Source: Hyaloraphidium curvatum SAG 235-1 (Eukaryota; Fungi; Monoblepharomycota). From it: a stretch of 64,000 nt of DNA. The stretch is taken from NCBI GenBank assembly GCA_025558095.1, contig JAIVFI010000027.1, positions 310,001 to 374,000 on the forward strand. The letters run 5' to 3'. The notes beneath the pieces were generated by a model. That model searched no databases. It was not told where the DNA came from and saw only the letters and a list, made by a program, of their open reading frames with translations. Position numbers and translations under genes: made by a program. Shown here piece by piece: positions 7,411-19,473 of this stretch (position 1 is the stretch's first letter; every line of letters starts with the position of its first letter).

Positions 7411-8949
7411 TCAACGCTTCCTCTTTCCAACCCTGCCCGCCTTGATCTCCTTGACCCTGTCCACCGCCGTCCAGTGGTTGTACATGATCCTGCGCCCCGC
7501 GATCTTCCTCGGCCTCGAGCTCACCGGAGACAACCGCCGGGCCTTTTCGACCTCCCAGCGCTCCTTGAACTCCTTCCTGTCGCGCCCGACCTTGGCGTAC
7601 TTGGGCACGTCCTTGTTGATGAAAGTGATCAGAGCCTCCCTGTGGACTGAACCGCCCGAGTTGTACATGGGCAGATTCATATGCTCCTCGACGTACTCGG
7701 AAATGAGAAGGCTCCCGGGCGGCGTATCAATCGCGAGTCCGAGCCGCACCATCACCTGCCCGCCTCCTTCCACCTGACGCTTCTTGGTCGAGGTCGAAAA
7801 GACGCCAATGAGGCAAGAGGTGCCTTCCAGGTTATCGTCGTCGGCGTGAATGTCCGTCGTCATGTCCTCTGCAATCTCATAAGTCGTCGTGGCTGACGTG
7901 GCAACCATGCGAAGATCCTCGGGGAGGTCGTCGACGTAGCCAGCATTGATGGCGTATTGCTCTGGCATGAGCTCTTTGAAGTCCTGGCTCATGGCCTCGG
8001 CCACGCGGTGCAACTTTGCCATGGGATAGAGGACCTCCAGCTTCTCGTTCCACTTGTACGGCCGGACTTTGAAACCCTTCATCCCAAGGTAGTCGACCGT
8101 CGTGCTGCAGTAGTGTGCCGTAAGCCCCGCGAGCACCACCCTCCCGGGATTGTCATCGGATGCGACGTTAGCGCGATCGAGTGGATCCCCAATCCAGGCC
8201 AGCTTATGCAGCACATCGCCGAGCTCGCCCCAATCGCCACCGTGCTCAGTCTGGACCAGTTTGGAGAGCCACGGTGGCCTGCACGTCGCCAGCAGGGCCA
8301 GTTTCCGCTCTCCATTCGATTGCCGTGCATAAACGCGGACAGTTTTCCCAGGTTCAAGGCGGATTCTCTTCCATCCGCCCTTGCGCGGGGGCAAAGTCGG
8401 CACCTCCACCTGGCCAGGGAGCAGGTGCGGCGGTCTCCCGGTTTTGGCGGCGGCGCCCGGCTCCAAACGCACTTCATTTGCTTCGCTTATGAGTTGCCTC
8501 AGGTGGCTCGATTCGGTGCGGGTGCCCCCGACGAGGCTGTCCTTCAGCGCCGCGAGCGCGCTGTCCTCCTTCCTGGCTGTCTCCAAGTGCCTGAAATCCG
8601 GCCAGGTATCGACGTCGTCGTCGACGTCGCACTCAATCTCGTTCCCCTCGATCACTTCGAACTGCGCAAGGCAAGCGCGCACGAAGGCCGCCTGGTTGCA
8701 GAGGCGGGTCCCAGCACCCCACGAGGGCCGCGGCGCCTCGGCCGCCCGGGTGCGCGACGAGGAGTCGCCAGACGGATCGGCTGACGACGGGCCTGCGGAG
8801 GATGGCCCCGCGGTCGGGTGCGGGTTGGGGCGGCCGTGGGCGCCGGTGGAAATCCGCGCCTGGACGATGTGCGACGGGTGGCCCTGGGCGTTACGCGAAG
8901 CGTTCCGGGCACGTCGCCGTCTGCCGTTGCTCTGGCTGTGCCGAGGCAT
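7411..8949 (-). CDS. TET/JBP-family 2OG-Fe(II) nucleic-acid dioxygenase, intronless, 512 aa
   Basis: TDIHADDDN (HxD), GGGQVMVRLGLAIDTPPGSLLI, EEHMNLP (distal His), HREALITF (2OG-binding Arg). Basic C-tail RVGKRKR. Confidence 0.8.
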   Translation of the reverse strand: MPRHSQSNGRRRRARNASRNAQGHPSHIVQARISTGAHGRPNPHPTAGPSSAGPSSADPSGDSSSRTRAAEAPRPSWGAGTRLCNQAAFVRACLAQFEVIEGNEIECDVDDDVDTWPDFRHLETARKEDSALAALKDSLVGGTRTESSHLRQLISEANEVRLEPGAAAKTGRPPHLLPGQVEVPTLPPRKGGWKRIRLEPGKTVRVYARQSNGERKLALLATCRPPWLSKLVQTEHGGDWGELGDVLHKLAWIGDPLDRANVASDDNPGRVVLAGLTAHYCSTTVDYLGMKGFKVRPYKWNEKLEVLYPMAKLHRVAEAMSQDFKELMPEQYAINAGYVDDLPEDLRMVATSATTTYEIAEDMTTDIHADDDNLEGTSCLIGVFSTSTKKRQVEGGGQVMVRLGLAIDTPPGSLLISEYVEEHMNLPMYNSGGSVHREALITFINKDVPKYAKVGRDRKEFKERWEVEKARRLSPVSSRPRKIAGRRIMYNHWTAVDRVKEIKAGRVGKRKR

Positions 8950-11900: not shown

Positions 11901-13468
11901 CGCCGGCGTCAGTCACAGTGGCCGCCCGCGTCGGTCACAGTGGCCAAGGTCCATGCCAGACAATCAGAGTATTGCGGTCCCGGTCATGTCCCGGCAAAGT
12001 GCGCGCAAGTCGAGGCCCAAGGTGCACGGTATCCGCATTCCCATCGACCCGCCAAGCTTGCCGGAGCGTCAGCACGCCCAAGCTTTGCGCGGAGGAGGTG
12101 CTCTGAACCAGCATAAACGGCGAGCACGGCGGTTCAAGCCCACGGGAAAAGCAGTTCTGCCCGAACGCGAGTGTAGGCGTTGCGTGAGCATGCAAATGCC
12201 GCGAGTCCTGCTGCACCCATCGACAATCCACGCTCTCCCTCCCGCCCTCTGGGCACCGCGCCCGCCCGGGAAGCGATGCCGCGCACCGTGCCCGTGGAAT
12301 CCCGCCCGGCGCCGCCGACGCGCGCCAGGATGCGCTGCGGCAAGGGCCGCGCGAGTCGGTCCGTGGCGTTTTCGGCCGCCCGCGCGCATCCGTGCATCCA
12401 CGGGTGGGGCGGAGGGGTCTGTTCGGGGAGGGGGTCATGAGGTGGGATTCCGTGGTTTTGCTGGGAGCGGCGAGGGCCGGCGGCCGTCCCACGGCGCCGT
12501 GACCGGGGTGTTGGCGAGGAGGTGGGTCCGACTCCGCCCGCGCGCGTCGGCTTCCCCGCACCGCTGACGGTGCGTCTGTAGGGACCACGCCGAGCGGAGT
12601 TTTGTGGTCCGGCGGCGGAGGTTGCGGCTCCCCATGAGCCCCCGCACCATCCTGATGGACACAGCGCCGCCCCGCATGGTCGACGTCCCCGGCGACCGAG
12701 CTTGCGCGGCGGAGTTGCGCCGGGGTACAGGAACGGGGCACCGACGCCGGCGCTCGTTCCACCTGCCCTCCGCCGCCATGGAGCGCGTCCCGCCGATCGC
12801 GGTGACGCGGCAAGGCGCGGCGCGATGCGCTTCCACTTCGTCGCGGCCGCGCTTCGACGCCTCCGGCAGCACGAGGTCGAGCTGCGACGGTGTCTGGTGC
12901 TTGTAGGTGCCCCAGCCCGTTCCCCCCGACCCTCTTTCCGGTGCTTTGGCGGGCGCGGGCTGTTTGGAGTCGCTCGGAGCGGCGCGCCGTGCGGACCGGC
13001 TCGCCCACAACCTCCTCTCCAACTCGACCGCGGATCCCCCGCGAGTCAGACCCGTGCTCCCCGCGGCACGCGTCGGAGACGGAAGCGCCGGCCGCGCTCG
13101 GTGCGCCCCTCGGTCGCCCGGTGAGTGATTCGCGTGCTCGGGCAGCGCGCGCTCATCTCCTCTCGCTCGTTCCCTCCGAAGCTCCCTCGCGTCGGACACC
13201 TGGCCACGCGTCCGCGCACTCCGCCTGTTCCGCACCGGTCGGGTCAGGAACCCCTCGTCGTGCTGGCGTGGGGCCGCACAGCGAGATCTCGCGGCGACCG
13301 CCCGGCACGTCTTGCTGCTGGCTCTCCGCCTCGCAGCTGCTCAGCACCCAGCTCTACGCGCGCGCTCTGCTACCTTCTAGACCTTCTTGCTACGTGGAAG
13401 AGGACTTGGAGGCCCGCGCGCGTAGCTGCCAGCGTTCCTGCCGCCTCGATCCCGGGACCGGCGACACA

Positions 13469-16400
13469 ATGAGCGGCGTCGCGGCCGGCAGCGTCATGTC
13501 GGTCGCGGACGGCACTGGCTGCGACGTTCAGGATGTGTCGCCCCACATTACGCACTGTCTGACCCTCTTGCTGGAGGCCGAGGACGGGGCGGGTGGCGTG
13601 GACGCTTCCGTGATGCGGGCACCTCACGCTCAGCGGCTCGCGGGTCACGTCCCAGTCGCGACTCTCGTGTTTCCGGAAGGAGAAGGTCCCACGTTGACGG
13701 ACAGGTGCCTTGTTCTGAAGCCGCGGAACTGGGTCCCCGTCGACCAGCTGGGCGACAGCGACGTTGTGTTTGGGTCTATGACGGTGGTCAGACGCGATGC
13801 TTGCACTGTGGAGGACTACGTCATGAAGCTTGAACACCTGAACAAGGAGCTTCACTCGAACCATCCCAAGGGCTTCCACGATCAGCTCCGGTTTAGGCGC
13901 CTCGGTGGTGCGGTCCTCAGCGACGGCACGATCTCCCAGAGCCACGGACGGACGTACGGCACGCTCTACCTCAATCACCCTTATGATGTTGCGGTTGCTC
14001 AGCGAGACATAGAAGCTTTGACCGGGAGCCCATGGGACGGCGTAAGGCACTCTACAGAACGGAAGAGCGCGTTTGGCAACAATTTCGAGCTGAGATTGCC
14101 AGCTGCTTTGGCCAGGGACATTGCCGCTGCCACGGGACAGAACGGACGCAAAACCGACAAAGCACCTGCTCTTTTCCCACCCGCCCTCGAGGGCGCTGGG
14201 GTCCCGCGCGCCCATCGGGACGAACACCTGAGCGGAATCTATGGTGGCGACGGTTGCGCGACCGTCTATGTCAGACCCGCTGACAATTTCACCGAGATAC
14301 GCTACACTTTCTCTGCAAAGAAGGTGTTCAAATCCGATGCGGAAAGGATGTTCAACGACCATATGCTCCCGTGGCTCACCGAACGGGGTCTGACTGCGTC
14401 TTTGAAGGTCGCCCGCGAGTATTCTACGAAGGACGGCACTTTGATGCTGGAGTTCTCAGTGACACACACCATTCCGGAGATCCCAGACTTTTCCAATACT
14501 CTGCATTTCGCCTATGACGCGAGCAAGCAACTGCGTCAGACCATGGCAGAGTTGTACCGTCGTTATTGGGAGTTCGCGGCCGATATCTACCGCAACTTTC
14601 TCCGGAGTGCGTTGCGTGCCTATGCTGGCGGAGGTGTCACGCAGCCGCAGGCGATTCTTCAGGCTCGGAACGAGTACGAGACGCGGTATCCCTGGATGAA
14701 AGCCTCTCTGCCATGCTCACGGACTTACTTGTCCGAGCTGAAGAGCGGTCGTAGAGACGTCGAGCACGCTGGCGAAAAGCGAAGGATACCCCCGCTTGCC
14801 GAGTGGCTGGAGAAGAACGGAACCAGCGACTTCTTCCTGGTCGAGGGCCGCGGCGAGCGAAAGATTGCTTACGGACTCAAGCGGGGAGATGGGGGCCGCA
14901 TTACCCTGCCGTTCTTCCCGCGGAGGCTTGCCGCCGTGCGTCGTTCGGGGGCGAGGGGTGCCGGGCGGGCCAGGCTGGCCCAAGCCTTCAAGCTCTTCAA
15001 CGAGAACTTCAACATTTTCCTCATCGACAACGTTCTCGTCGCGTTCGTGTGAGCTTTTACTCGAGTCTCTGCAGCTTCTCGTCGCACTGATTCGCTCCGT
15101 AGAGACGACCCGGACGAGATCGAGGCATTGCGCGCGCGGACGGCGCCCCTCCTCCGGAAGTTGGACGCCAACGGGATCCCTGTGGGGTGGAAGCCGCGGG
15201 AGCCTGCTCCTGAGACGAAGGGCGGGGGCACCGAGAAGCGACCGGCTGCCGACATGGCCGACGGCGGGGAGCAAGACGGCCGGAGGCCGAAGCGTCCGCG
15301 TCAGGCGTCGGCGCGTGGCAGCAAGTCGGGATCCGACGACGGCCCACTCGTCTACGGTCTCCTGAAGGCGAAGCAGGTGGGTGCTTGGCTGGTGGCGTGT
15401 CGCTGCATCGCGAGACCCACGCCGTCTGTCCTTTCCAGCTTGTCAACCTCGACGTGGCCATTCGCGATCGTTTCGAGCACCTGCTGCTCGACACGTTCAA
15501 GACCGTCGGGGGTTCCGATCAAGTACTCTTGGCCGGAGAAGTGCTCGAGCAGCTGATGGTCGAGTACGACGAGGATCCCTGGCGGCAGGAGCGAGATCAG
15601 GTCGCGATGGAGGCGCTGATTGCGGAGTTGATGGTCAACATGAACTCCGTGAGCCTGTGCCTCTCCAGACACTTGCGCTCGGATGATTGACTTGTGCCTA
15701 CCGCGCAGCGAGGGCTCATCTCGTTCGATCGAGGGCACGAGCGGGCGGACAGGGCGGACGACGGGGAGGGGGAGGATTGGCTGGACGACGTGAAGGAACA
15801 CGAGGACGGCAGCGTCTTGTCGGCTTACGGCGACTTATCGGAGGCGGCAGCTGGGCGGGAGTGCTGGGGGGGCGTTTTCAACCAGGGTGTGGTTCGGGAA
15901 TTCGCCTCCATCGACGATCTGGAGCCGTGGATGCGGACGGCGGGCATCGAGGTAATGTTGCCCGAAGCAAAGAATCTCGGTTCTTTGACACGCTGCGCAG
16001 GAACTCTGGTCCCGTGCCCATCGCGTCGCCGAGGCCGAGGCCGAAGCCGAAGAGGAGGACGAGCAGCAGATGCTTCTCAAGGACTACCGCAAGTTCCAAG
16101 AGCGAGTGTGGCCGCCGGAGGACCCGGAGGTGGGGGAAGCTGTTGCGTGTTCTGCTGACGACTAACGCAAGCGCAGTCGATCAAGGAGATGGACGAGATT
16201 GACGGAATTGTAGCGGATTTGCTCGGGGGAGGCATTGTGGACCGCGCGACAGTGGACATGATCCAGGTTGGTTCCTTCGCCTCTACTCGTGCGCGACAGC
16301 GCGACACCAACGTGCTCCTTGTCACAGGACCGTATCCAGGCCGTGATGGCCGGAGATGGGGACGTTTTGGTCATGGAAGAGGAGGCGGAGCCAAGCATCG

Positions 16401-16567
16401 TTGACTTGCTTGAGGCGGTACGTTAATCTTCTGGCTCTCGGGTTGCGCCTGATTGGGCTGTTGGATTCCGCCAGCTCCACGACCGAGCTACGGCGATGAG
16501 GCCTCGTCGCAGACTGCTAGAATGGAGCGACCTGACGAAGGAAGAGTACGAGGCGTTGTGGATTTAG
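13469..16567 (+). CDS. Intein-derived protein: degenerate Hint + LAGLIDADG endonuclease fused to an acidic C-terminal region, ~902 aa, 8 exons
   Basis: Exons 13469-15048, 15103-15376, 15439-15648, 15709-15951, 16001-16129, 16177-16266, 16328-16417, 16475-16567 join in one open frame through GT-AG introns. Motifs LGGAVLSDG and HLSGIYGGDG. Hint-like N-terminus GVAAGSVMSVADG...WVPVDQL..SDVV. Block F/G-like FKLFNENFNIFLIDNVLV. Confidence 0.8.
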
Positions 16568-16952
16568 ATTCATGGTGGGTCGTGGAGTTTAGTTGACGGC
16601 AGCGGCAGACTGATGTTGCTTAGACAGGCATCCTTCGCACGTGCGACACAAAGGAAACGATCTGCTGCTTAACGATACCCCCGCCATGTGCATTCCAACT
16701 GCTGTAGATAACCACGAATCGAAGAATTTTATCCAGTAACCATTGAGCTCGGCTGAGGCAGCGGACCCCATCCGACAACGAGTAGTAGCGCCAGCTTAGC
16801 AGTGCTCAAATATTCTTCACATTAGTTTCCTTCAGCTTTTTGCTTTTGCATTCGTGCGTCAGGGTTGGGCGGTGGGGGACAGCCGGAATCTCGGGGTCCT
16901 CCACCCGTCCGACTCTCCTGACCGCCTTCCCCCCGACCGCATCGCGGCGCCG

Positions 16953-17472
16953 ATGTGGAAGTTCAAATCGGCGCCGTCGTCCGACGCCACGCCGGCGCAA
17001 CGGCTCGAGATGGAGATGCTCGCGGCGGTCAAGGCGGCCAACGCCGACATCCTGCGCGGCTACGCGCTGCGGTTCGACGCGCCGCTCGACCACGCCGACC
17101 CCGACGACGGCCAGACGCTGCTGATCAAGGCGGCGATCCACGAGGAGGGGCTGGAGCACCGGGTCTCCCTCTGCCGCATCCTGCTCGAGAAGGGCGCGAA
17201 CCCCGACGCAAGGCAAAGAACAAGAACGCGCAGACGCCGCTCATGTACGCCGCCTCGATGCCCGCCTACAACGTGCCCGTGCTGCGGTTGCTGCTCGACT
17301 ACGGCGCGGACATCGACGCCCTGTCGGGCCAATGCCACACGGCCATCTCGGTCGCCGCCTACCTGGGCCACGAGTCCAACGTGCGCTTCCTGCTGCGCGA
17401 GGGCGCCGACATCGCCGTCAAGGACGGCCAGGGGAAGACCGCCGCGGACTGGGCCTGCGACAAGGACGCGAT
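16953..17472 (+). pseudogene. Ankyrin-repeat protein, frameshifted and 3'-truncated
   Basis: GQTLLIKAA, LLEKGANPDA, QTPLMYAA, LLDYGADIDA, GKTAADWA. Frameshift at ~17208-17216. Runs into antisense carboxyltransferase sequence at ~17473. Confidence 0.8.
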
Positions 17473-17652
17473 CTGGCGTTTCACGCCCGGATCCGAAGGC
17501 TCGAGGAACCGCGACCGCGAGGCGCGGTCCGCCACCTCGGCGAGCACGCCCGCGTACGGGGCGCCGGGCGGCGGCGGGGGCGCCTCGGGCGCGAGAGAGG
17601 AAGAGAGCTGCGCGGCGACCGCGGCGATGCGCTCCGCGGCGGACTTGGGCAT
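17473..17652 (-). pseudogene. 5' part of the carboxyltransferase gene, separated from 5532-7098
   Basis: MPKSAAERIAAVAAQL has a PTS2 consensus R-I-x5-Q-L. VLAEVADRASRSRFLEPSDPGVKRQ matches the family N-terminus that precedes GKLTxRER. Same strand as the 3' part. Confidence 0.7.
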
Positions 17653-18027
17653 GCTGGGAGGTGTGGGAGACAAAGGAGGATTGCGAGGTGGTGACCCTCT
17701 CGATCAACTCCTTCTGCCCCCCCTGGCCAGATTGCCTTCGTCACTGCAAATCTGCGAGCTAAGGTGATCCTCATGAGTTAGAAGGATTGCTCTCCATTTC
17801 CGATGGCGCGCGGCCGGAAGGGCCACTTCGGAATCCGCCCGTCCAGCCTCGAAACCGTCCAATCCATCATTTCTCCCGGCGATCCGGCACGGTCGCGGAC
17901 ACAGTTAGAGGTAGCTGCTTCATCACTAAAACTTGGATGGGACGCGCCCTGGTCGCCTTACTTGTATCCAGAAGTGATCGATTGCGCACCTCTAATTCCC
18001 GCAACCGCATCTCCCGGCTGTATCGCA

Positions 18028-19473
18028 ATGCGGAGCCTCCTCTCCGCCGTGATCCTCGTCGGCCTCGCGGCCCACGCGCGCGGCGAGGTCGACCCGCGCA
18101 CGCTCGTCCTGCGGTGCGCGGTGGGCGGCGACCGGTCCGCCGCGCTGTCTGCGCTGCACGGCGCGGCGGCGGCGGCGCGCGCCGACGTGTGGCGCGTCGG
18201 CGCATCGGACTTTGACGTGCGCGTGGCGCCGCACGACGCGCCGGAATGGCGCGCCGCGTTCGCCTGCGCCGACTGGATCGGGGACGTGTCGCCGCTGCTC
18301 GCCGCGGCCTCGCGCGTCGCCTCGCTGCTGCCGCCCCCGCCGGCCGCACACGCCGCGCAGCACGCGATCGGCCGCCGTCCCCGGCCCCTCAAGCACGACT
18401 TTGACTCGTACCTCGACTACCCGTCCATGGTCGCCCTCCTCGAAAGCTACGCCGCCGAGAACCCCGCCATCGCCCGCTTCGTGCCCTCCATGGGCGTGCC
18501 CACCTGGGAACACCGCAACATCTCGTGCCTGGTTATCCGATCTGCCGCCGAAGCGGCAACGCGCGCCGCCGCGGTCCGCGAGGGGCGGAACCAGGTCCTC
18601 TTCACCGGCGGCATGCACGCCCGCGAGTGGATCGCCCCAGCGACGGTGCTCTTCATCACCCACCGCATCCTAGAGGAGCACGGCAAGCCGGGCTCGGCGG
18701 TGCGGGCGCTGCTCGAGGAGGAGGGCGTGGAGTGGACCCTGTGCCCCTGCGTGAATCCGGACGGCTATACATATGCGCACAAGGGGAGCGGGCAGAGGCT
18801 CTGGCGCAAGAACAGGCGCAGCAACGGCCTAGGATCCTACGGCGTCGATTTAAATAGGAACTTTCCGGTGCATTGGGGAGAGACGGGCTCGAGCAGCCTT
18901 CCTTTCTCCGAGATCTACCAGGGTGCGTGTTTGGACCTTTCGAACTGCCAATCTCGAGCGTCAAACCCACTAACGCCCCTTGGCAGGTCCGTCGGCCGGC
19001 TCCGAGCCCGAGACCCAGGCCATCATGTCCTTCTCCCGCTCCCTGCCCAACCTCACCGCCTCGATCGATTTCCACTCCTTCGGCCAGCTCATCCTCCGCT
19101 CCTGGGGCTTCACCGAACGCCCGTCCCGCAACGAGCGCATCCTCAAGAAGCTCGGCGACGGCATGGGGCACCACCTGCCCGGCTACACCTCGGAGCAGTC
19201 GAGCGCGCTGTACCCGACCAGCGGGAGCGTGGACGACTGGCTGAGCGCCGAGCTGGGGATCGCGGGGTTCACGATCGAGCTCAGGTGGGTCCGGAGCGGT
19301 GGGGCGCGGGAACGAAACACGCTCACCGTGTGCCTGTCGACAGGGACAAGGGAGACAAGGGCTTCCTGCTCCCACCCTCTGAGATCAAGACCGTAGGGGC
19401 CGAGGCGTTCGAGGCCGCCATGTTCTTCACCAAGTTCGTGCTGATGCACGAGATCCCCCCAAACGGGGAGTAA
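18028..19473 (+). CDS. Secreted zinc carboxypeptidase, M14A
   Basis: Signal peptide, GGMHAREW, NPDGY, LWRKNR, GVDLNRNF, IDFHSF, FTIELR. Introns ~18923-18987 and ~19285-19342. Confidence 0.92.
   Translation: MRSLLSAVILVGLAAHARGEVDPRTLVLRCAVGGDRSAALSALHGAAAAARADVWRVGASDFDVRVAPHDAPEWRAAFACADWIGDVSPLLAAASRVASLLPPPPAAHAAQHAIGRRPRPLKHDFDSYLDYPSMVALLESYAAENPAIARFVPSMGVPTWEHRNISCLVIRSAAEAATRAAAVREGRNQVLFTGGMHAREWIAPATVLFITHRILEEHGKPGSAVRALLEEEGVEWTLCPCVNPDGYTYAHKGSGQRLWRKNRRSNGLGSYGVDLNRNFPVHWGETGSSSLPFSEIYQGACLDLSNCQSRASNPLTPLGRSVGRLRARDPGHHVLLPLPAQPHRLDRFPLLRPAHPPLLGLHRTPVPQRAHPQEARRRHGAPPARLHLGAVERAVPDQRERGRLAERRAGDRGVHDRAQVGPERWGAGTKHAHRVPVDRDKGDKGFLLPPSEIKTVGAEAFEAAMFFTKFVLMHEIPPNGE

Follow-up and report, generated by a model that had tools for sequence, protein, structure and literature searches.

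A stretch of 64,000 nucleotides of the fungus Hyaloraphidium curvatum SAG 235-1 (contig JAIVFI010000027.1, forward-strand positions 310,001 to 374,000; referred to here as the window and numbered from its first nucleotide) carries, at positions 13469-16567, an expressed nuclear gene present in one copy; its first coding exon was once a LAGLIDADG intein and now encodes a free-standing protein module. The module has lost the residues needed for protein splicing, has kept most of the conserved residues of its endonuclease part, and is joined through spliceosomal introns to an acidic tail. Our tentative reading, to which we give a probability of about 45%, is that the intein was domesticated as a nuclear site-specific LAGLIDADG endonuclease, in a way that resembles the origin of the yeast endonuclease HO but independently of it, with an activity and a target that are predicted from the residues and the fold. 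A first-pass annotation, made by a model from the sequence alone, had already proposed a splicing-dead intein domesticated in the manner of HO and its relative WHO.

Transcript and gene structure

The window has a G+C content of about 65% throughout and belongs to an assembly of 31.9 Mb in 55 contigs. Evidence for expression came from the single public run that contains this stretch, stored as assembled contigs and labelled 'RNA?'. One RNA-derived contig of 3,547 nt aligns to positions 12690-16736 with zero mismatches and skips nine short GT..AG segments. Since a genome-wide search found every part of the gene in one copy, this intronless contig must come from spliced RNA. The gene has 10 exons, 8 of them coding. 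When the exons were joined with a local script, a coding sequence (CDS) of 902 codons in a single frame was obtained, running from the ATG at 13469 to the stop codon at 16565-16567. The introns are only 47-62 nt long and follow the GT-AG rule, which marks the genome as a eukaryotic nuclear one, and all seven CDS junctions preserve the frame; the first-pass annotation had placed seven such introns joining the tail in frame, and every one of these junctions is exact in the RNA contig. The parts of the gene from the start codon onwards are as follows.

13469..15048, plus strand: coding exon 1, 1,580 nt with no intron, residues 1-526 and two bases of codon 527
15049..15102, plus strand: CDS intron 1, 54 nt, phase 2, seen as the joint 15048>15103 in the RNA contig
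15049-15102, 15377-15438, 15649-15708, 15952-16000, 16130-16176, 16267-16327, 16418-16474, plus strand: all CDS introns, from joints in the RNA contig
15103-15376, 15439-15648, 15709-15951, 16001-16129, 16177-16266, 16328-16417, 16475-16567, plus strand: tail exons, from RNA joints and the continuous frame
16568..16736, plus strand: 3' untranslated region (UTR), taken to the end of the RNA contig (16736 from length arithmetic; coverage ends at about 16738)
16575-16623, plus strand: GT-AG intron of the 3' UTR, seen in the RNA contig and absent from the first-pass annotation

CDS intron 1 splits the codon of the '+1' residue and thus lies exactly at the C-terminal boundary of the intein. Its 5' splice site, GTGAGC at 15049, includes a TGA (15050-15052), which is the stop codon of the unspliced open reading frame (ORF) of 527 residues. 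Retention of this intron would yield the intein-like module by itself, lacking both the acidic tail and the basic patch within it, and could act as a switch controlled by splicing.

Relationship of exon 1 to an intein family

When the 527-residue product was compared with Pfam, no family was matched even at E 10; a single-sequence search of PDB sequences with the exon 1 product returned nothing, and a word-based homologue search returned only the query itself. An exhaustive HMMER search of 1.84 billion representative sequences gave 88 relatives (best E 1e-20, identity 23-39%), which are inteins of about 500 residues, the matches being internal segments of larger proteins. Pfam analysis of the best relatives identified Intein_splicing and LAGLIDADG_3 domains inside family-B DNA polymerases (PolB), GCN5-type acetyltransferases and SET-domain proteins, and the hosts of the family also include RPB2-like and RNR-like genes. 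With a family hidden Markov model (HMM) built from the aligned segment, exon 1 scored 435 bits from end to end, while 69 full-length inteins scored 300-590 bits. The probability of a 527-codon open frame at this base composition is about 4e-8, as estimated from base frequencies. It is clear from this value and the HMM score that chance is ruled out as the source of exon 1, and that the exon has the full intein-like architecture ascribed to it by the first-pass annotation.

A scan of IMG/VR yielded 75 further loci, many of them on contigs with GVMAG names (giant-virus metagenome-assembled genomes), so the resemblance to inteins of large DNA viruses, noticed earlier from a few sequence segments, is substantiated. 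These 75 loci are canonical inteins inside long host ORFs and occupy few recurrent insertion sites (ERD/C..N/CMVS, NPH/C..N/CIPS and FDF/C..N/CSLY, with slashes at the intein boundaries). One PolB intein host also lies in a virus-like context.

The family inteins interrupt genes of chromatin modifiers as well (P0014, on the metagenome contig stretch L011:10001-13303; also P0004, P0018, P0012 and P0020). A GCN5-type host is invaded at its catalytic motif (..IVF/C...HN/CAIT..), a bromodomain is encoded in the next ORF, and the neighbours are ordinary eukaryotic genes, namely a DEAD helicase, a formin and SGF29. In a SET-domain host the intein sits at the ..NHSC.PN/C motif. In the literature searched we found no description of GCN5 or SET intein hosts, and a 2018 survey of eukaryotic inteins (PMC5784728) does not mention GCN5.

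Loss of splicing residues and retention of endonuclease residues

Residue conservation was assessed over the 69 full-length members of the family. At intein position 1, where 65 of the 69 have Cys1, the query has Gly3 (13475-13477). Block B (13697-13708) has T-D-R-C where T-x-x-H is expected: Thr77 is kept, and the His column, conserved to 97%, is occupied by Arg79/Cys80. The conserved block-B residues Asp70, Arg72 and Cys76 are also lost, the block-F Asp is replaced by Lys508 and the block-G Gly by Asn521. The module ends in Ala525-Phe526 (15041-15046), whereas 53 of the 69 members end in His-Asn and 66 have a terminal Asn; the +1 residue is Val, as against Cys in 63. Because all protein-splicing residues are replaced, the module cannot splice or cleave itself out. 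The substitutions named in the first-pass annotation (Gly for Cys1, TDRC and a terminal AFV) are therefore genuine departures from the family. Measured against a functional class 1 intein, exon 1 has the Hint fold and lacks the nucleophile, the block-B motif, the C-terminal and +1 residues and the position between two exteins.

The endonuclease part behaves differently. Both LAGLIDADG acidic residues, which had been recognised from the outset, are Asp152 and Asp261, in columns that are each 97% Asp in the family, and Lys353, invariant in 68 sequences, is kept too. Motif 1 retains R144, G147, D152 and G153, and motif 2 retains G256 and G259-G260-D261-G262; elsewhere in this part D173, D180, P211, G226, P237 and P246 are unchanged. 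Of the columns conserved to at least 90%, 23 fall in the endonuclease part and 11 in the Hint part; the query retains 20 of the former and 5 of the latter (Fisher p 0.03), while the other members keep a median of 96% of the endonuclease and 100% of the Hint columns.

Predicted fold of the module

An AlphaFold2 model of the exon 1 module, computed with the family alignment, had a mean predicted local distance difference test score (pLDDT) of 88.6 and a predicted template modelling score (pTM) of 0.91. The best Foldseek matches in the PDB were the TliVMA intein (E 4e-9), PI-PfuI and PI-SceI, these three with E values from 4e-9 to 1e-5, and PI-PkoII. Residues 1-130 and 478-527 superpose on the Ssp DnaB mini-intein 1mi8 with a Z of 17.8 and a root-mean-square deviation (rmsd) of 2.2 Å over 136 residues, and the Mtu RecA and Npu DnaB inteins gave similar Z values. 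Similarly, residues 136-347 match I-DmoI (Z 17.0, rmsd 2.2 Å over 163 of 175 residues), and I-OnuI and E-DreI also match the endonuclease domain. The model thus carries both folds that the earlier proposal called for: an intact Hint fold and, nested in it, an intact two-motif LAGLIDADG fold are predicted, arranged along the exon as listed here.

13469..13858, plus strand: N-terminal half of the Hint fold, residues 1-130 (alignment and 1mi8 superposition)
13859..14518, plus strand: double-motif LAGLIDADG endonuclease domain, residues 131-350 (I-DmoI match)
13895-13927, plus strand: LAGLIDADG motif 1, ending in Asp152
14228-14254, plus strand: LAGLIDADG motif 2, ending in Asp261
14519..14899, plus strand: family-specific helical region, residues 351-477, with Lys353 (14525-14527) at its start
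14900..15048, plus strand: C-terminal part of the Hint fold, residues 478-526 (alignment and superposition)

The model helices 133-152 and 247-261 end exactly at Asp152 and Asp261. As in two-motif LAGLIDADG proteins, there are two acid-ended helices about 100 residues apart and a pseudo-symmetric alpha-beta-beta-alpha-beta-beta-alpha fold. The helical region reached a pLDDT of 84 when modelled alone. Its fold matches (residues 348-480), to saposin-like and assorted helical proteins, had a best Z of only 6.1 and were rejected as noise.

Structural matches also included WhiA (8dy9_I and 8dy7_I), which brings in another explanation, namely that the protein is a domesticated, sequence-specific binder of DNA (or RNA) that does not cleave and serves in a nuclear regulator, comparable to bacterial WhiA or to LAGLIDADG maturases, with the tail as an activation or chromatin-interaction region. 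The WhiA matches, the intact fold and the basic character of the N-terminal module (isoelectric point, pI, 8.9) agree with this, the acidic tail would resemble activation regions, and three conserved endonuclease columns are changed. LAGLIDADG proteins that gave up cleavage often lose the acidic residues. Here, however, both catalytic Asp residues are kept together with the invariant Lys353 and the Gly-rich context of the motifs, and we regard a non-cleaving binder as unlikely.

The 5' leader

The transcript begins well upstream of the start codon.

12690..13468, plus strand: 5' leader, about 718 nt when spliced, 73% GC, with one GT-AG intron
13121-13181, plus strand: intron of the 5' leader, seen in the RNA contig and absent from the first-pass annotation

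With the leader intron removed, the frame of the start codon contains a stop at 12904-12906 and then no ATG before 13469. Seven ORFs of the leader and upstream region, on both strands, gave no Pfam match. A second, small contig of lower depth joins 12521 to 12582; since this junction lies 5' of the in-frame stop, it cannot add coding sequence. Because the leader frame is closed and has neither an ATG nor a Pfam match, the protein starts with Met-Ser-Gly, two residues before intein position 1, and there is no N-extein. An upstream extein exon, which would have made the locus a decayed intein inside a normal host gene, is therefore not part of this gene.

The leader (12519-13468) is unusually long, about 720 nt or more. 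The junction between 12521 and 12582 suggests an extra upstream exon or an alternative start, and the leader ATGs at 12777 and 12824 could form short upstream ORFs.

The acidic tail

The tail has 375 residues, 87 of them Asp or Glu, and a pI of 4.4, so its length and acidity are as first annotated, as is the presence of a basic RRPKRPR patch.

15281-15301, plus strand: RRPKRPR basic patch from the translation, resembling a nuclear localisation signal (NLS), a role suggested by the motif

The G+C content at third codon positions (GC3) of the tail is 0.80, and that of neighbouring genes 0.76-0.79. Because of this neighbour-like value, and because the seven junctions keep the frame, we consider the tail to be coding sequence rather than UTR.

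Database searches with the tail were made exon by exon. None of the seven tail exons matched Pfam at E up to 10, there is no Cys-x-x-Cys run in the translated tail, and no paralogue of exons 2-4 was found in the H. curvatum genome. In the ESM Atlas, exon 3 gave only sub-threshold EF-hand-like leads, which were not used, and exon 4 gave no usable match. The tail also matches none of the host proteins of the intein family.

Residence in the genome and signs of selection

Over its 1,580 nt exon 1 is free of introns, and the tail has seven in 1,125 nt. At the intron density of the tail, the probability of an intronless exon 1 is 5e-5, which indicates that the two parts have different histories. 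The GC3 of exon 1 is 0.71, compared with 0.76-0.80 in the neighbours, and this composition, close to that of the host, argues against a recent arrival. The anatomy fits the fusion of an intronless intein block to the 5' end of a resident gene rich in introns; it also fits the loss of the N-extein from an invaded gene.

Selection was judged by indirect arguments; the ratio of nonsynonymous to synonymous substitution rates (dN/dS) needs orthologues, and none are in the collections. The alignment of exon 1 is collinear with the family and shows no frameshift and no stop, although its end branch in the family tree is the longest of all (2.58, against a median of 0.65). In a neutral simulation run until changes had reached 6 of the 11 codons conserved in the Hint part, about nine stops accumulated in exon 1, and exon 1 was free of stops in 0.3% of 300 runs.

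These results bear on the possibility that the gene is a functionless relic, i.e. an intein that decayed after its host gene had lost the N-extein and that is transcribed and spliced only because it lies in an active transcription unit. The loss of every splicing residue, the longest branch in the family, the lack of an orthologue and the orphan tail would all be expected of a relic. On the other hand, the frame is open for 902 codons across seven junctions where drift of the observed extent should have left about nine stops, endonuclease residues are selectively retained, the fold is predicted with high confidence, the tail has the codon bias of neighbouring genes at third positions, and no extein remnant lies upstream. 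A relic thus seems quite unlikely to us. The open frame and the selective retention also speak for the domestication proposed by the first-pass annotation; the nuclease or DNA-binding function included in that proposal is a putative one.

Several observations weigh against a domesticated endonuclease and should be set beside the evidence for it. The very long branch is also what relaxed constraint would produce, and the drift simulation was crude, in that indels were ignored and the Hint changes were taken as neutral. Three well-conserved columns of the endonuclease part are changed (G169N, F253H and G346H), and the difference in retention between the two parts is only moderately significant. 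No close orthologue was found, none above about 29% identity being present among 5.8 billion protein clusters. In addition, no DNA-binding domain can be recognised in the acidic tail, whereas HO has a zinc finger, and the putative nuclear localisation signal is a motif only.

The neighbourhood of the gene was also inspected. Downstream, at 16955-19470 on the plus strand, the neighbours are ordinary genes, one with ankyrin repeats (Ank_2, E 2e-14) and one for an M14 zinc carboxypeptidase (E 1e-38). In the RNA contig that covers the ankyrin gene, five single-base differences from the genome occur within 16963-17162; the contig of the intein-derived gene has none. About 4 kb upstream of the transcript start, an ORF on the minus strand (7411-8949, 512 residues) has an ordinary protein-like composition; it is an orphan gene that matched nothing in Pfam and has no relatives among the IMG/VR contigs. 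No giant-virus capsid gene (PF04451) was found in the genome, but the control genomes gave none either, which makes this negative uninformative.

Extein-less relatives

Two members of the family from metagenomes, P0007 (L003:1298-2863) and P0059 (L002:559-2310), are ORFs that stand free, begin and end where an intein would, lack the nucleophiles and have a degenerate C-terminal motif. P0007 has Met at position 1 and ends in ..CN/Q followed by 20 acidic residues; a giant-virus major capsid gene (Capsid_N, E 1.7e-27) is found 232 bp away in divergent orientation. In P0059 position 1 is Gly and the end reads ..AG/T; this ORF adjoins a collagen-repeat gene. Both keep the endonuclease columns and LAGLIDADG residues, and from their sequences both may represent giant-virus homing endonuclease genes that arose from inteins and became free-standing. 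The contigs of both are virus-like. In the tree, P0059 falls inside a clade of canonical inteins with a support of 100; because of this nesting, the change to the free-standing form happened more than once, and, as far as sequences can tell, inteins of this family have repeatedly become free-standing endonuclease genes. Both ORFs are intronless, whereas the H. curvatum gene has spliceosomal introns, and a tblastn comparison of all its exons with the two contigs showed no similarity to the tail.

A sister grouping of the query with P0007 (Shimodaira-Hasegawa-like approximate likelihood ratio test, SH-aLRT, 96) was not accepted, as more of the rare residues of the query recur in several canonical inteins than in P0007. 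Both branches are long, and the grouping may be due to long-branch attraction.

The extein-less relatives on giant-virus-like contigs are one reason to ask if the H. curvatum module is still selfish, that is, an intein or a homing endonuclease gene of the free-standing kind which mis-homed into a resident gene at its 5' end and persists there because the fusion is tolerated, or because it still biases inheritance in its own favour by cutting empty alleles, as WHO elements do. The intronless block does form the very 5' end of a gene that is rich in introns, its unspliced ORF ends at the intein boundary with the TGA inside the 5' splice site, and WHO provides a precedent (PMC7282813). Nevertheless, the 31.9-Mb genome contains the gene once only, and neither a further member of the family nor a pseudogene copy occurs in it. 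Neither the family profile nor Pfam Intein_splicing detected any other intein in the genome. Between 9000 and 21000 only chance-level repeats occur, none of them meaningful, with no duplicated host-gene fragments and no flanking repeats. The largely host-adjusted composition and the very long branch also argue against recent mobility. A selfish element, too, seems quite unlikely to us.

Comparison with HO, WHO and canonical inteins

In the literature searched, HO and WHO of budding yeasts are the only nuclear genes described as derived from an intein and standing alone, and they are the closest parallel to the present gene; the 2018 survey speaks of domestication solely with regard to Hint domains as a class (PMC5784728). 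The ancestor of HO and WHO is proposed to have arisen when an intein mis-homed close to the 5' end of a gene already in place (Coughlan et al. 2020, PMC7282813). Like HO and WHO (PMC7282813), the H. curvatum gene encodes an intein-derived Hint and LAGLIDADG module, is expressed as a nuclear gene of its own without an N-extein, has lost splicing, and is fused at its C-terminal end to a region that is not of intein origin. In block G, which HO and WHO have lost, the terminal His-Asn is gone from the query, but the block-G strand is still present in our model and a long C-terminal region is attached. There are also differences. HO carries a C-terminal zinc finger, while the tail described here is acidic, has no zinc finger and is interrupted by seven spliceosomal introns. 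WHO genes form clusters beside their target gene together with duplicated fragments, and we found one copy and no such fragments. The host genome, intron-rich, with 65% GC and 32 Mb, is also unlike that of a budding yeast.

The intein closest to HO and WHO is VDE (PI-SceI), and the nearest relatives of the query are inteins of giant viruses and protists. The family profile matched DnaB, RecA and DnaE inteins (E 1e-21 to 1e-12) and did not match PI-SceI at E <= 1e-3. Together with the tail lacking a zinc finger, this bears out the independence from HO and WHO that had been suspected, and 'HO/WHO-like' is best understood as an analogy of origin and not as family membership.

With canonical inteins of Nucleocytoviricota and protists the query is collinear over about 500 residues, including the helical region and Lys353, and shares their fold. 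Those inteins lie between exteins and have Cys1, the block-B His, a terminal His/Ser-Asn and a +1 Cys or Ser; the query has none of these and, unlike them, has no host protein to restore. In PI-SceI (VDE), PI-PfuI and TliVMA, as in the query, the endonuclease is nested in the Hint fold, but these proteins splice, are only about 10% identical in sequence to the query and lack the 351-477 helical region as modelled.

Proposed function and origin

Under the preferred reading of a domesticated endonuclease, the product would enter the nucleus and bind, as a monomer, one long asymmetric DNA site through the two LAGLIDADG beta-sheet saddles, in the manner of PI-SceI or HO, with the retained Hint scaffold helping in DNA binding. 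Asp152 and Asp261 would hold metal ions, Lys353 would assist, and both strands would be cut; the acidic tail may be a regulatory or partner-binding part. As to its origin, the most likely course would be that an intein from the pool shared by giant viruses and protists was copied, without introns, to the 5' end of a resident gene rich in introns, the route also put forward for the ancestor of HO and WHO; alternatively, an N-extein may have been lost. The fusion would then have been kept by selection.

A more specific version of this proposal is a site-specific endonuclease, active and under host control, that introduces a programmed double-strand break into the genome of H. curvatum itself, e.g. 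for switching of a cell-type locus or another programmed rearrangement, a giant-virus-type intein having been recruited independently of HO and the tail gating the activity. We think this version rather doubtful as it stands.

If the preferred reading is correct, the locus would be the second independent case of an intein becoming a nuclear gene, from a different intein family and in a genome that is not yeast-like, with proof of a transcript and with spliceosomal introns. The route from an intein to a stand-alone nuclear endonuclease by 5' fusion to a resident gene looks repeatable, and P0007 and P0059 suggest that its first step, in which splicing is lost and the nuclease retained, also occurs in viruses. 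The gene would offer a naturally monomeric nuclease scaffold with a long site, its activity being predicted, and the inteins of giant viruses appear to be linked to gene innovation in their hosts.

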